NCBI GenBank assembly: GCA_976226885.1
Contig: OZ320319.1
Span: 47,182,001 to 47,246,000, forward strand
Length of the DNA: 64,000 bases
Direction: 5' to 3'
Origin: Iphione sp. A-MEVVRFRX5
Taxonomy: Eukaryota
In this document: positions 25,088 to 30,000 of the stretch, piece after piece
Layout of the letters: every line of letters starts with the position of its first letter
Numbering within the stretch: position 1 is the first letter of the stretch
Program-made: the position numbers and the translations under genes
The notes under the pieces: model-generated
What the model was told of the DNA's origin: nothing
Databases searched by the model: none
Seen by the model: only the letters and a program-made list of their open reading frames with translations

Positions 25088-25180
25088 TGACGTCATTCCG
25101 GGGGAAGACCCCAGTGACTAATATAGCACCGTGGACTGCACTTGTATATAAGCGGTGCCTCTCATCACAGCGGTCATTGA
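25088..25180 (+). promoter_or_regulatory. Putative inducible core promoter of the TNIP2-like gene
   Basis: TGACGTCA (25088-95), GGGGTCTTCC on minus strand fitting GGGRNNYYCC (25103-12), TGACTAA (25115-21), TATATAAG (25145-52), and Inr-like TCATT whose A (25176) is 31 nt after the first T of the TATA box. Confidence 0.7.
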
Positions 25181-25314
25181 GACAGCGTAGAGCAATACGC
25201 GCACATCAGCCACACTATACGCAGACAACTTCTACGCTGGGAACAAAAACCTTAAACCTAACTGGATGCAGTGTGAATTCAACACATACATTTATGCAGT
25301 GTGCTAAATCTAAT

Positions 25315-25536
25315 ATGACCATAGCCAAAGAAGACAGTGGCTGTGGCTCAGAATCTCAGTTGGAGACTGTGCCCACGACGCGGACAAAAGCTACAAGTGT
25401 ACCTGATGTGAGTGAGGAGAGGATGGCTCCAGATACAAGTCCAGCTGTCTTGTCAGAGGCTTTGTTCAACCAACTCAAGACACAGATCGAACAGCTCCAG
25501 GCAGACAACAGGCTACTAAAAAGGCAACTAACAGAG
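25315..25536 (+). CDS. TNIP2: TNIP2/ABIN-2-like protein, exon 1 (nested in NMNAT intron 2)
   Basis: MTIAKEDSG...QIEQLQADNRLLKRQLTE resembles human TNIP2 IEKLQEENRLLKQKVTH (recalled); donor GAG|GTAAGG, phase 0. The start codon is inferred (A at -3); another in-frame ATG is at 25294. Confidence 0.85.
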
Positions 25537-26219
25537 GTAAGGGATTCTTTTGATGATTTCAATCGCATATAGTATGCAGACACGACTAGAAACCGTTGTT
25601 GTAAAGTGTATCATGTTATGAGGATAAACATTATACAAAATTTGTAAAATACATGTACACTGAAGAAATACATGTTTAATATCAGATAGCATGATAAGGG
25701 CGGAAACAATTGTATATAAATGCACGTGTGCATATCCTTAGCAGCTGTGCCATCCTACTAACGCCTCTTTATCGGTTGTATCTCGATCCTTTGTCCCAAT
25801 CCCAGCGTCATAACCCCTTTGTCTCCGTCGTTGCGTTTTCCGTCAATGGTCTATGATAACTCATAGTGATCGCTGTGTGTAGGGTAGCATGTCGAAACTA
25901 CCTAACATATATATTTGATGATTTATATATATCTAACAAATACTGACAGACAAGCGGTGTGAAATTTTCTATTGAATACATTAAATATATCATTATTAGT
26001 TATAAGCACCTGTTCCAAATTACTAGGTACCTGATCCACCCAGAGTACTTGCCATAATCATTACTTTACCATTTTGAGGAATTTCTATCTGAAAATTCTG
26101 AATAGAAATAGCCTCTGGGGATCACAATGCACAAACTGTACACAGATATACATGTAAAGTGCAGCTAATTCTGCTATCCATTCCTGTTCTCATCGACATC
26201 GATTTTGTGTTCTTTTCAG

Positions 26220-27086
26220 TCCATAGATTCCAACAACAAGTGGCTCTCCTACGACAGTAAGCGGGACGCCATGGTAAACAGCCTGCTTTCTAACAACAAG
26301 GCTCTGCAGGCAAAACTTGCACAGAAAACACCAAGTGACTTGAGCCAGACCAACCTGGTTGAGGAAGCAGAGCGATGGCGGGCAATAGCTGAGGAGGAGA
26401 TCGAGCTCAGGCAGTACGCCGAGAGTGTTAACCACCGCCAGCAGCTTTTCATAGATCAACTGCAAGGAGCACTTCAGACAGCACAGGAATCTGCGCCTTC
26501 AAGCTCCCTTAAAGACTATTCCTCTTTGGAAAAGGCTCGTGAGCGGATCATTCTGCTTGAGAACCAGGTGCAGGTCATCTCTGAGGATTTTGAAGAGGAG
26601 AGGCGAGATCGCGAGCGTGCCCAATCACGCATTTCTGAGCTGGAGTCGGAGTTGCTCCTGGTTCGGGAGCAGCATGCCCAGTTCCAGGGTGACCACATGG
26701 CCTACCTGGCCATGCGAAGGGAGCGCTCAGCCGACCTTTACCGCCAGGAGTACCAACGCCAGTTGTTTCTACAACAGAATCAGCAGCAACCGGAGGATGT
26801 GACCGGTACATACAGTAGCCCATCCCGGTCACGGCTCATTCCACACGGCCACGTTGAGTGTGACGCGCCTTACGATGAAGACGAGAATGATGAGGACGAG
26901 CTGGACATTCAACTATCATGTACAACTCGAGGACAGACTAATTGCAGGAGCTTGAGCCCAAGCAGGTCAAGCAGTAGTGTCAGCACAAACTCTTCCTATG
27001 CCAGCATGTTAGAGTGTCCTAAATGTCATCAGAAATTTCCTGTTGATGACCCATTGACGTTTTTGGAGCATAATGATCAGTGTTAA
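26220..27086 (+). CDS. TNIP2: TNIP2/ABIN-2-like protein, exon 2: EABR-like coil, UBAN ubiquitin-binding coil, C-terminal C2HC zinc finger
   Basis: Acceptor [30 protein letters not shown] resembles TNIP2 [51 protein letters not shown] resembles TNIP2 [35 protein letters not shown]. CPKC-x14-H-x3-C directly precedes TAA. Confidence 0.92.
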   Translation, partial: [288 protein letters not shown]

Positions 27087-30000
27087 TGAAGCCTTACACC
27101 CACAACCGATGGAAGTGGGTAAACTGTGATATTTATATATAAAAGAGTGATAACCAGAAAGAAACGACATATACACGTATCTGAGATTCATTTGGCAGGC
27201 CTATTTCAGCAAAAGAGAATTTTCATTATCAATCTCATGATTCAAAGAGTTCCACTTGATTTATAACTTATACATGTATTTATTCTCAAAACATGGCAGC
27301 CATCTTTAATTCTATCTATTCTTATTTGGCAATACCTTGTTATATATATTGGATACGGTATATTGTAGAAGCTGTGATCAGTAACCCTACTTTCCTGAAC
27401 GTTGAATTATATGATTTGGAGCCTCGACCCAAACATTACATTGTCAATTTTCCCTACCTTGTCTCTCCCGCGGATTCAAACCAGGATCGTTGCTACAGCC
27501 TACAACTGTTTCTGTGATCTATCAACTGGGCCACAACATCTCTCGCTTTTTCACCTTGCTAACACTGTTATAGGTTTCTGGTACATGTTGCGTGTCTCCT
27601 GTAACAAACTACTGTATACGGGTGAATATAACTTGTGCAGTGCTCTGTATCCTTCTGCATGGGAGACTGTAACCATTAGTCTTCTCCACACGTGACTGTT
27701 ACCTGTGCTGTGCCTTCTGTATCTTCTGGTAGAGATGACTATTCTCTGTTGTGTGCCTTTGGAACAAGTGACTATACTACCTGTATAGGCATTTGTCATG
27801 CTTTGAGTAAGATACACCTCATTAGAGGAAGTAAATATCCATTGGTAGAGATTACCTTGGCTGTGCCTCAGTAATCTCTATCTTATAAAGACCGTTACAA
27901 ACCATAACAAATCTCATATCTATTTATCTTTTCACACAATGTATTTTATTTTAGTAATGTATAAGTACCAGGATAATGCATGATTATACTTAAATATTTA
28001 TTTTTACTGTAGATATGTTGTAGTCCATGTCTTCAAGGTTCACTAAAGCTGCAAGTGTGGCAATGTTTGATATGGATATTGGCCTGTATATATAATTTAT
28101 TTGTGTGATTCTATGAGTGCGTTCGTATGAAGAAAAAGTATTCAGAAACTGCGGCATGAAAATAAAGTGTCAAAACGATCTCAAATGTATAGACTCGTTT
28201 CAATTATTTTTTTCATAAAGACAAGCACACATATATTTCAGTTTATTTCATTGTATCTTTAACCAGGAATATATTCACCTATCTTCAGGACAGGGCTCTT
28301 CCATATCCTCCTAGGGTAGCATATAGCATACTAACATCTCTTATTGAGAACTGAGAGACCACAATACCGGGGATGCCCCCTACATAGCAATAATATCCCT
28401 AAAAACGTAGCTACTGTCCTATCTTGGTGATACATCACAGTAATGTTGCTTGACACAATCAGTACCTGTGTCTATTGACAATAATTTGTTGACTGTCACA
28501 GAAAAATGACAATCAGAGGCAAGGTTTCGAAAATATCTCTTCAGGCATCACTTGTTAGTTTTTCTCACGGCGTCAGTATTACAAAAATAACCCTAAACAT
28601 ATATCAATAATATAGTCTATAAAATATTTTATTAAAAACGTTAAGTTAAGCAATTAGACCATAAGGCTGGGTTTTAACATGTTAACAAAGACAGTCTATT
28701 CCATGGGAAAATGTATCAATGCCACCAATTATTTACAAGTGATCATACTAATATAAAACCTGACGAATCGATGTTATAAACAGCCATGTTAAGTAAAGGC
28801 CTCATGAAAGCAGACTTGAACGTTAATCAGAAAGGAATCAGACAGAAAACCTACATCTCTTTCAGTTCTTTCATACAAGTATTGAGAGGGAGAGAGTCTA
28901 AACTGGAAAATCTAATAAAAAGGAACAGGAAGTAGTGCGACTAAAATACCGATAACGAACATTCCCAACCGCATAAAAAACCGTAAAATAGAGGAAAGCG
29001 GTCACAGACATGCGCGTTATGTCATGTGCATCTGGTGAATTCTTGCGCAAGATCCACTGGGAATTCCTTGTCACGGGATTCCCGTCGATCCAAAACGAAA
29101 AAAACGAAGTGGAAACTTCGACCACGGGTTACAGCCTATCTGTCACGAGAGGAGATTAGGATACGACGGCAGACAGTCCTCGACTTGGTGACAGATACAC
29201 ACAGGGGTGGGGCGGCGGGTGGGGGTGGGGGGGTGTAGGTCGTCGGGGGTGTCGTCCCATATCAGCTAGATAAAGTGATTAGAAACCAACTCTGAACCCA
29301 CTATAAGCTCTGAATACTCAAAATGCATTGTCACTACCTAGCACGTCTTCCAACTTGAATATCACACTCGGTGACTTTCCGCGAGTGACTGGTGATGGGC
29401 TTTCGACCAAACGGGCCGGGCTGCAGGAGGCCCCAACAACAGTTTACCCATCACTATGCCAACTCTGTTTCGCTGTTGCCCTTGGCGACACGATGATACG
29501 GGACGTATGACCTATACAAAAAGCACGAGGAGGGGAACGGAATGAGTGTGTGTCAAAGTACGCGGAACTTCCAGCGGCATCTTTTCCTTACCGGGCATCC
29601 ATATAAATAGCAACTAGGGGAAAGTTCGGATGTCCATGGATCGCAGAGTCATAATCACAAGATGAAAAACCAATTTGAAAAACCAAACTAAATAGAGAAG
29701 GGTTTATCCACTCGTACATATTGACGTGTGTTCGGTCATGCTTGAACGCTCACATAGGGGAGGGAGGCCTTTCTAAAACAGGATATCTTTTAGCACATAA
29801 CACTTAATTTATATATGTGTCTAAGCATCACGTGTAATGTGTCACACGGTCACACATGGTGAAATCCCTTCACAGGGTTGCCATGGCACTGGCGAGTGAC
29901 ACATGCCTTTCGGCACCCTCATCCACCTACTTGTTATTCACATGCAAACAGACGGTTAAACATTGTAGAATTAGGGACACACCTTGGGGTAGGTATATGC

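Follow-up and report, generated by a model that had tools for sequence, protein, structure and literature searches.

An ABIN-2-like gene nested antisense within a long intron of NMNAT

The window analysed here, a 64-kb stretch of DNA, contains an ABIN-type gene lying antisense inside a long intron of NMNAT. We read the ABIN-like/NMNAT combination as a new, conserved host/nested pair of familiar type. Very probably it is an ordinary opposite-strand pair, in which a functional ABIN-type gene within an NMNAT intron is old, passively kept and transcribed largely independently of its host. The analysis yields clean models of two genes, NMNAT and the one encoding an invertebrate ABIN-2-like protein, and it documents a host/nested pair surviving deep divergence, at a locus that would allow interference to be distinguished from co-regulation and from neutrality. 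An earlier sequence-only reading of this DNA had not known the arrangement to be described; our literature search agrees, having returned no paper on an ABIN-like gene in NMNAT and none linking the TNIP2 and NMNAT loci.

The host gene, NMNAT, is encoded on the minus strand by eight coding exons, with every intron GT-AG and a complete open reading frame (ORF) of 267 amino acids (Table 1). The N-terminal GxFxPxT/HxxH nucleotide-binding motif is found in exon 1, and the C-terminal ISSTxxR motif of NMNATs is present as ISSTKIR in exon 7. When single exons were compared with Pfam, none but exon 1 matched (CTP_transf_like, profile positions 1-16, E 0.0032). In a search of the PDB, exon 4 matched residues 83-128 of human NMNAT1 (3.5e-5) and exon 5 matched residues 148-173 (7.1e-5), and the exon matches are colinear with the human protein. 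The gene is an NMNAT1-like form, and the basic PTKKRKLD stretch in its exon 4 looks like a nuclear localisation signal. An acceptor-like site at 45194 suggests a non-coding exon upstream of exon 1. Weak tblastx matches at 12446-12496 and 11494-11595, in the 3′ half of the gene, were attributed to low complexity or chance.

The nested gene is composed of two coding exons on the plus strand. Its spliced ORF is intact and encodes 369 amino acids, with the acceptor ttttcag preceding exon 2 and a TAA stop at 27084-27086; this GT-AG model bears out the complete two-exon, opposite-strand gene proposed earlier. Exon 2 lies within the longest ORF of the 64-kb window, a stop-free stretch of 293 codons (the runner-up without N has 157 amino acids), and the GC content of the coding sequence is 0.51, versus 0.41 for the host intron. 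The end of exon 1 (..RQLTE|) is homologous to that of a relative's gene (..NQLAE|, loci L002 and L003), and the phase-0 intron falls at the same codon position in three other loci (L001, L002 and L003). The ATG was placed by homology to the relative, whose gene has an upstream stop; in the window, there are zero in-frame stops from the N run to the ATG.

The nested unit (25088-28186) is located entirely within the NMNAT intron, on the other strand and with zero exon overlap. It is more than 9 kb from both flanking NMNAT exons; for the coding sequence alone, the distance is 10.6 kb to exon 2 and 11.7 kb to exon 3. The gene models of both genes thus agree with the antisense position inside the 24-kb intron 2 that had been assigned before. 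Rfam gave zero matches at gathering score over the whole 64-kb window, and no match with E≤1 at 14700-15200.

Table 1 Features of NMNAT and of the nested gene in the window
Feature	Position	Strand	Basis or remark
NMNAT coding exon 1, nucleotidyltransferase ATP-binding motif	45079..45157	-	ATG at 45157
NMNAT coding exon 2, 89 nt	37672..37760	-	gene model
NMNAT intron 2, host of nested gene, 24,037 nt	13635..37671	-	gene model
NMNAT coding exon 3 (ELVPSNHRAAMIKLALQTSDWI)	13567..13634	-	gene model
NMNAT coding exon 4, basic PTKKRKLD stretch	11632..11786	-	human NMNAT1 match
NMNAT coding exon 5 (LLCGADLLESF)	11025..11176	-	human NMNAT1 match
NMNAT coding exon 6	10490..10591	-	gene model
NMNAT coding exon 7, ISSTKIR motif	9510..9568	-	gene model
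NMNAT coding exon 8, stop TAA 8450-8448	8448..8547	-	gene model
N run, 152 N, directly 5′ of nested promoter motifs	24924..25075		upstream promoter sequence hidden
Nested gene, candidate core promoter	25088..25151	+	motif matches
Perfect, palindromic CRE TGACGTCA	25088-25095	+	motif match, short
Loose κB-like site GGGGAAGACCCC	25101-25112	+	motif match, short
AP-1-like TGACTAA	25115-25121	+	motif match
TATATAA	25145-25151	+	motif match
Nested gene coding exon 1 (81 aa; disordered N-terminus, then coiled-coil start)	25294..25536	+	gene model
Nested gene intron, 683 nt, phase 0, GT-AG	25537..26219	+	donor GT at 25537
Nested gene coding exon 2, 288 aa plus TAA	26220..27086	+	gene model
Nested gene, inferred 3′ UTR, GC 0.365	27087..28186	+	motif-level

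The nested gene is, by its sequence features, an ABIN-family ubiquitin-chain reader with an architecture of the TNIP2/ABIN-2 type. Exon 2 encodes an EABR-like motif (exon-2 residues 4-23), a UBAN coiled coil (approximately 77-155) carrying the ABIN signature ubiquitin-binding motif, and a C-terminal CCHC zinc finger of the ubiquitin-binding type (266-288). Used as a single sequence in phmmer, the protein has human TNIP2 as its best PDB match (chain 5h07, 1.3e-6). The family profile (A1) again places TNIP2 first (2.6e-15), followed by TNIP1 (1.7e-9), optineurin (1.2e-6) and NEMO (1.6e-5), and both rankings uphold the TNIP2-like label given in the sequence-only reading. The same profile also matches the EABR of CEP55 (3wut/3e1r) at 3.3e-6, in a separate N-terminal region. 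Within the UBAN, residues D, F, E, R, D and R are invariant across 13 relatives and all are intact in the nested ORF; the Pfam CC2-LZ match (2.9e-5) is below gathering score (24.8 vs 35.3 bits). The zinc finger, C-x2-C-x14-H-x3-C, forms the final 23 residues of the protein; its C, P, C, H and C show conservation of 90% or more among the 13 relatives, and the match to Pfam zf_UBZ is weak (E 0.13). Pfam EABR scores 1.3e-4 on the nested protein (21.9 bits vs a cut-off of 25) and is matched in 8 of the 13 relatives (best 1.1e-8). By homology, the UBAN dimer would bind M1/K63-linked polyubiquitin, and the protein would damp NF-κB-type signalling.

An exhaustive protein search found 82 relatives among 1.8 billion representatives (best 1.7e-50) and supplied the contigs for synteny; a word-index protein search had returned one. 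Named relatives, from Lingula, Octopus and Capitella, are called TNFAIP3-interacting protein 1/2-like, CEP55 or CCHC NOA-type, the last being the UniProt name of the Capitella protein (CCHC NOA-type domain protein).

Likeness to vertebrate TNIP2/ABIN-2 is seen in the DRERAQSRI run and following ELE, which are identical between the nested protein and human 5h07, in a CCHC (NOA-type) zinc finger at the C-terminus, a feature that TNIP2 alone of the vertebrate ABINs is known to have, and in size (369 versus about 430 amino acids). Unlike vertebrate TNIP2, the nested protein has low overall identity outside the UBAN, and its gene has two coding exons instead of several; nor was the A20-binding region AHD1 of TNIP2 identified. 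We also know of no vertebrate TNIP2 that sits in an NMNAT gene. CEP55, which combines EABR, NOA and zinc finger, offers a second comparison: the N-terminal NxxWxxYxxxR of the nested protein matches the CEP55 EABR, and certain Octopus and Lingula relatives carry the NCBI name CEP55. However, among PDB entries TNIP2 and TNIP1 are by far the best matches to the UBAN region, and the EABR match is below the Pfam gathering score. Any binding of ALIX or TSG101 by the motif would be putative. Placement with TNIP2 follows the ranking of the PDB matches; the alternative would be an ancestral ABIN/CEP55-like protein.

The sequence-only reading had credited the nested gene with a promoter of its own. CRE, κB-like, AP-1-like and TATA motifs are indeed clustered upstream of its ATG, which makes this region a candidate at motif level only. 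In a relative, TATATAAGG precedes the ATG of the TNIP-like gene by about 100 nt, and a canonical κB decamer, GGGGTTTCCC, lies 112 nt upstream of that TATA. At the other end, the AATAAA at 28161-28166, already picked out as a candidate, is the first AATAAA or ATTAAA after the stop on the plus strand, and is a candidate poly(A) site by motif. On the minus strand, the nested unit contains four AATAAA in 3.1 kb, versus 0.79 per kb intron-wide, and all four fall in its AT-rich 3′ UTR. Cryptic polyadenylation of NMNAT inside the nested unit was considered and set aside, as this count is not clearly enriched.

Whether the nesting is conserved in related genomes had been proposed as a check. A second species (ENA ERZ25767047, an independent long-read assembly) keeps the layout, which is therefore neither an artefact nor species-specific: NMNAT exon 1 (88% amino acid identity) and exon 2 (93%, with intact AG/GT at the same splice sites) are followed by an antisense TNIP-like gene, the 3′ end of which is 3.2 kb from exon 2. 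This layout recurs in a pair of long, independent contigs measuring 738 kb and 328 kb. No further NMNAT exon was found between exon 2 and the TNIP-like gene, nor within about 20 kb beyond it; there, the order and orientation of the exons point to full enclosure by NMNAT, with exon 3 unreached. The TNIP-like protein is about 45% identical between the two species, and NMNAT exon 2 has a pS of 0.81, so synonymous sites are saturated. To judge by these comparisons, the nesting is old, being common to species with saturated synonymous divergence. The nested gene itself is intact and, by the evidence of the relative, under purifying selection, since dN/dS is 0.13 between the relative's two 96%-identical copies of the TNIP-like gene.

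Neither an NMNAT host gene nor a single NMNAT exon was found near the annotated TNIP-like genes in Capitella, Lingula (two paralogues) and Octopus. On the genomes examined, the nesting is lineage-restricted, because it is absent around these genes. Around the TNIP-like gene of a third species (ERZ26052378), we saw no credible exon of NMNAT in approximately 18.6 kb upstream and 10 kb downstream; these distances are to be read against the window, where each flanking exon is over 10 kb off. The genes called rightward of the TNIP-like gene in ERZ26052378 contain in-frame stops.

Opposite-strand nesting within long introns is common, and a short gene within a long intron is the commonest kind of protein-coding overlap (PMC5174743, PMC8467205). 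Described Drosophila and mammalian nested protein-coding pairs have the same layout as the pair reported here (PMC5174743, PMC8467205); unlike them, an ABIN-like gene in NMNAT is absent from the searched literature, and it has been retained despite saturated synonymous sites. The most likely history is that an ABIN-like gene was inserted or trapped in the long NMNAT intron and was then kept passively, because a nested gene is not removable without precise relocation out of the intron. As separation requires moving the whole gene, selection for coupling does not follow from the fact that a nested pair is conserved. The nested gene would use its own TATA-containing candidate promoter and its own candidate poly(A) signal, and transcription of either gene is most likely largely independent of the other. 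If polymerases do meet head-on, the interference is probably tolerated, or kept small by differing time and place of expression; in Drosophila, nested pairs tend toward divergent expression, limiting or abolishing interference (PMC5174743). A point against passive retention is that deep retention and κB-like/CRE motifs would also be predicted by a selected regulatory link.

Positive coupling, in which the nested promoter or its enhancers open the intron chromatin and raise NMNAT transcription or start a short NMNAT isoform, is very unlikely. It has a precedent in C. elegans, where opposite-nested pairs are often co-expressed and a nested gene can induce its host instead of repressing it (PMC12274878). 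There, ceh-10 lies in polq-1 in the same configuration as here, a regulatory-protein gene in an intron of a housekeeping enzyme gene and in the opposite direction; CRISPR and smFISH experiments established that inductive interaction, whereas the ABIN-like/NMNAT pair is known from sequence alone (PMC12274878). However, an NMNAT transcript starting at about 25 kb would lack exons 1-2, and since these carry the nucleotide-binding motif, a short isoform would probably be inactive.

We hold to be very unlikely the converse model, based on the sequence-only reading, that a strong immune stimulus (NF-κB/CREB) switches on the antisense ABIN-like gene, which causes head-on polymerase collision or altered splicing within NMNAT intron 2 and transiently lowers NMNAT output, tying NF-κB feedback to NAD+ supply. 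The geometry permits it, as synthesis of the NMNAT pre-mRNA traverses the whole nested unit; the nesting is retained in a deeply diverged species; and the perfect CRE and κB-like site of the nested promoter have a counterpart in the canonical decamer of the relative. There are also documented cases in which nested genes interfere with each other's transcription (PMC5174743, PMC3192792). Yet the promoter motifs are short and putative, conserved nesting is expected even without function, surviving Drosophila pairs diverge in expression (PMC5174743), the C. elegans nested gene acts by induction (PMC12274878) and the minus-strand AATAAA are not clearly enriched. Moreover, the putative coupling would not be a general feature, because the Capitella, Lingula and Octopus TNIP-like genes that we examined are not nested in NMNAT. 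Immunity and NAD+ metabolism are already connected via TIR-domain NADases and, if the genes were coupled, a cis-wired link from innate-immune feedback to NAD+ metabolism would be of real interest. We give still less credence to the proposal that the capture was kept by selection as a cis switch, in which NF-κB/CREB-driven antisense transcription through the intron would hold back elongation of NMNAT or splicing of its exons 2-3, and on immune activation NAD+ synthesis would transiently fall, NMN/NAD+ would rise and TIR-domain NADases would be sensitised, with the same transcript encoding the feedback inhibitor.

Finally, it is scarcely credible that the locus is a misassembly at the N run or a decaying TNIP-like retrocopy: although the 152-N run adjoins the candidate promoter and the coding sequence is mostly in one large, retrocopy-like exon, order and orientation recur on the two independent contigs of the other species, the phase-0 intron is shared with three other loci, and the ORF is intact with every family-invariant residue, in keeping with the low dN/dS of the relative.

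The TNIP2-like gene is composed of two coding exons separated by a phase 0 intron of 683 nt, and the spliced reading frame encodes 369 amino acids. Exon 2 lies within the longest open reading frame of the window, a stop-free stretch of 293 codons (the second longest free of N has 157 amino acids), and the GC content of the coding sequence is 0.51, compared with 0.41 in the host intron and 0.365 in the inferred 3′ UTR. The earliest AATAAA or ATTAAA 3′ of the stop codon is the + strand AATAAA at 28161. Judging from the motifs on its 5′ side, the gene would have a TATA promoter of its own.

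Coordinates of the nested gene, its 5′ flank and the exons of the NMNAT host
Feature	Position	Strand	Description
N run (152 N)	24924-25075		directly upstream of the nested promoter motifs; masks the upstream promoter
Promoter motif TGACGTCA	25088	+	5′ of nested gene; motif match
Loose κB-like motif GGGGAAGACCCC	25101	+	5′ of nested gene; motif match
Promoter motif TGACTAA	25115	+	5′ of nested gene; motif match
Promoter motif TATATAA	25145	+	5′ of nested gene; motif match
Nested gene exon 1 CDS	25294-25536	+	ATG at 25294; GTAAGG donor follows
Nested gene exon 2 CDS	26220-27086	+	acceptor TTCTTTTCAG precedes; TAA at 27084-27086
NMNAT exon 1	45157-45079	-	assembled gene model
NMNAT exon 2	37760-37672	-	assembled gene model
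NMNAT exon 3	13634-13567	-	assembled gene model
NMNAT exon 4	11786-11632	-	assembled gene model
NMNAT exon 5	11176-11025	-	assembled gene model
NMNAT exon 6	10591-10490	-	assembled gene model
NMNAT exon 7	9568-9510	-	assembled gene model
NMNAT exon 8	8547-8448	-	assembled gene model

The NMNAT model is complete: every intron is GT-AG, and the 267-amino-acid product contains the ISSTKIR motif and is colinear with human NMNAT1 (exon 4 corresponds to residues 83–128 and exon 5 to residues 148–173). As a member of its family, it would convert NMN to NAD+. Intron 2 spans 24,037 nt (37671..13635), and the nested gene occupies its central part, with 10.6 kb separating it from exon 2 and 11.7 kb from exon 3. 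Within exon 4 (11632–11786), a basic PTKKRKLD stretch occupies the position of the variable, NLS-bearing loop of human NMNAT1, which suggests that this is a nuclear, NMNAT1-like isoform. A good acceptor, TTTCCAG at 45194–45200, is found 37 nt ahead of the start codon of NMNAT, so the promoter of this gene and one or more non-coding 5′ exons should lie further upstream, at higher coordinates; a higher-GC stretch at 52–56 kb is a candidate for this exon or promoter. Rfam returned no family at gathering score over the whole window and nothing at E ≤ 1 on either strand of 14700–15200, so that its hammerhead models do not support a hammerhead in NMNAT intron 2. The NMNAT introns also contain (CA/TG)n-type microsatellites (11266–11331 and 14318–14381); matches of 'THTHTH' and 'CVCVCV' proteins to other loci stem from such repeats and were rejected as spurious.

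The best match of the product of nested exon 2 is the UBAN domain (a ubiquitin-binding coiled coil) of human TNIP2 (5h07; 1.3e-6), with which it shares an identical DRERAQSRI run and the ELE that follows; TNIP1 and optineurin match more weakly. Pfam matches to CC2-LZ (2.9e-5) and to the CEP55-type motif EABR (1.3e-4) are both under gathering score, and a UBZ-type zinc finger is matched weakly. An exhaustive search yielded 82 relatives (best 1.7e-50). Those that carry names are annotated in Lingula as TNFAIP3-interacting protein 1-like or 2-like and as CEP55, in Octopus as CEP55, and in Capitella as a CCHC NOA-type domain protein; on these names the animal is most likely a lophotrochozoan. Across 13 aligned relatives, the D, F, E, R, D and R of the UBAN motif never vary, conservation of the C, P, C, H and C of a terminal zinc finger is 90% or more, and an N-terminal NxxWxxYxxxR motif is common to the relatives. 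The profile of these 13 ranks TNIP2 first (2.6e-15), followed by TNIP1 (1.7e-9), optineurin (1.2e-6) and NEMO (1.6e-5), while the EABR of CEP55 matches a separate N-terminal motif (3.3e-6). Because of the UBAN matches, the conserved zinc finger and the N-terminal EABR-like motif, the predicted architecture (EABR-like, UBAN, CCHC finger) is of the ABIN-2 type, and the sequence describes a well-defined invertebrate ABIN-2-like gene. By analogy with its family, the protein would act as a coiled-coil dimer that reads M1/K63 polyubiquitin and restrains NF-κB-type signalling. TNIP2 is the top match of both the single sequence and the profile, bearing out the TNIP2-like identity proposed in the sequence-only reading, which also proved correct on the antisense position within NMNAT intron 2 and in every anatomical detail checked.

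At about 45% identity (tblastn), P0002/P0083 is the nearest relative of the nested protein; its gene is present on two long contigs (738 kb and 328 kb; ENA ERZ25767047) that are 96% identical to one another and probably represent haplotypes. Its exon 1 ends in ..NQLAE and its exon 2 follows a CAG acceptor at the same codon as in the window gene, a position also kept in a third, shorter metagenomic contig. NMNAT exons lie on the opposite strand: exon 2 (93% protein identity) is 3.2 kb beyond the TNIP-like stop, has 89 nt as in the window and intact AG/GT sites, and exon 1 (88% identical) is another 10 kb past it. The stretch from exon 2 to the TNIP-like gene, and about 20 kb beyond that gene, contain no other NMNAT exon; therefore, from the order and orientation of exons 1 and 2, the relative's gene should lie in the intron after exon 2. 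Comparison of the window with these loci shows conservation of nothing but the TNIP-like exons and NMNAT exon 2, whose order and relative orientation are unchanged. In NMNAT exon 2, synonymous differences between the two species have reached saturation (pS = 0.81), and the divergence is deep. The TNIP-like gene is under constraint, with a dN/dS of 0.13 for exon 2 between the relative's two copies. The nested gene may be inducible: in the relative's TNIP-like promoter (L002:8600–8800 and L003:8720–8920, the two loci of this gene), a canonical κB decamer, GGGGTTTCCC, lies 112 nt 5′ of a TATATAAGG box, and a GGGAATTCC is close by. The corresponding position of the window is within the N run.

Two intact genes thus lie on opposite strands, one wholly within an intron of the other, and we propose that the nested gene is independent and would have been retained passively. 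The literature on nested pairs in Drosophila and C. elegans makes this the default reading, and we consider it highly probable. In Drosophila, expression divergence, favoured by selection, tends to abolish nested-gene interference (PMC5174743); in C. elegans, there are hundreds of opposite-strand nested pairs, which are frequently co-expressed, and in one case the host is induced by its nested gene (PMC12274878). Such positive coupling between nested gene and host is very unlikely here. The sequence-only reading had raised the opposite sign, in which immune induction of the nested gene would dampen NMNAT by polymerase interference or altered splicing and so couple NF-κB feedback to NAD+ supply; we regard this as very unlikely. 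An artefact or pseudogene is exceedingly improbable, because a layout kept across deep divergence, with saturated pS, and a constrained gene rule out the assembly artefact or species-specific nesting that the same reading had allowed for, as well as a dead retrocopy.

As that reading had supposed, the arrangement appears undescribed: none of the papers in the searched library connects the TNIP2 and NMNAT loci. The pair adds a new case to a well-known type of arrangement, and its structure is ordinary; the interest of the locus lies in the hypothesis of coupling to NMNAT, not in the structure.

The nesting is not a universal feature. Around the annotated TNIP-like genes of Capitella, Lingula (two paralogues) and Octopus bimaculoides, the neighbouring genes are unrelated, there is no host gene, and no NMNAT exon occurs within 10 kb. 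On the ENA contig of L006, three called genes (2407–2856, 19219–19731 and 20102–20560) contain in-frame stops in both the standard and table-11 codes; genes in this assembly had evidently been predicted under a code unsuited to this eukaryotic contig, and the calls are therefore not real proteins. In a further species (ENA ERZ26052378), no credible NMNAT exon turned up from about 18.6 kb upstream to 10 kb downstream of the TNIP-like gene, a span to be set against the more than 10 kb that separate the nested gene from either flanking exon in the window. A Pao/BEL-type retrotransposon reading frame of 997 amino acids (L009:16680–19673; RVT_1, Pao_retrotransp and integrase) is located there, some 15 kb on the upstream side of the TNIP-like gene.
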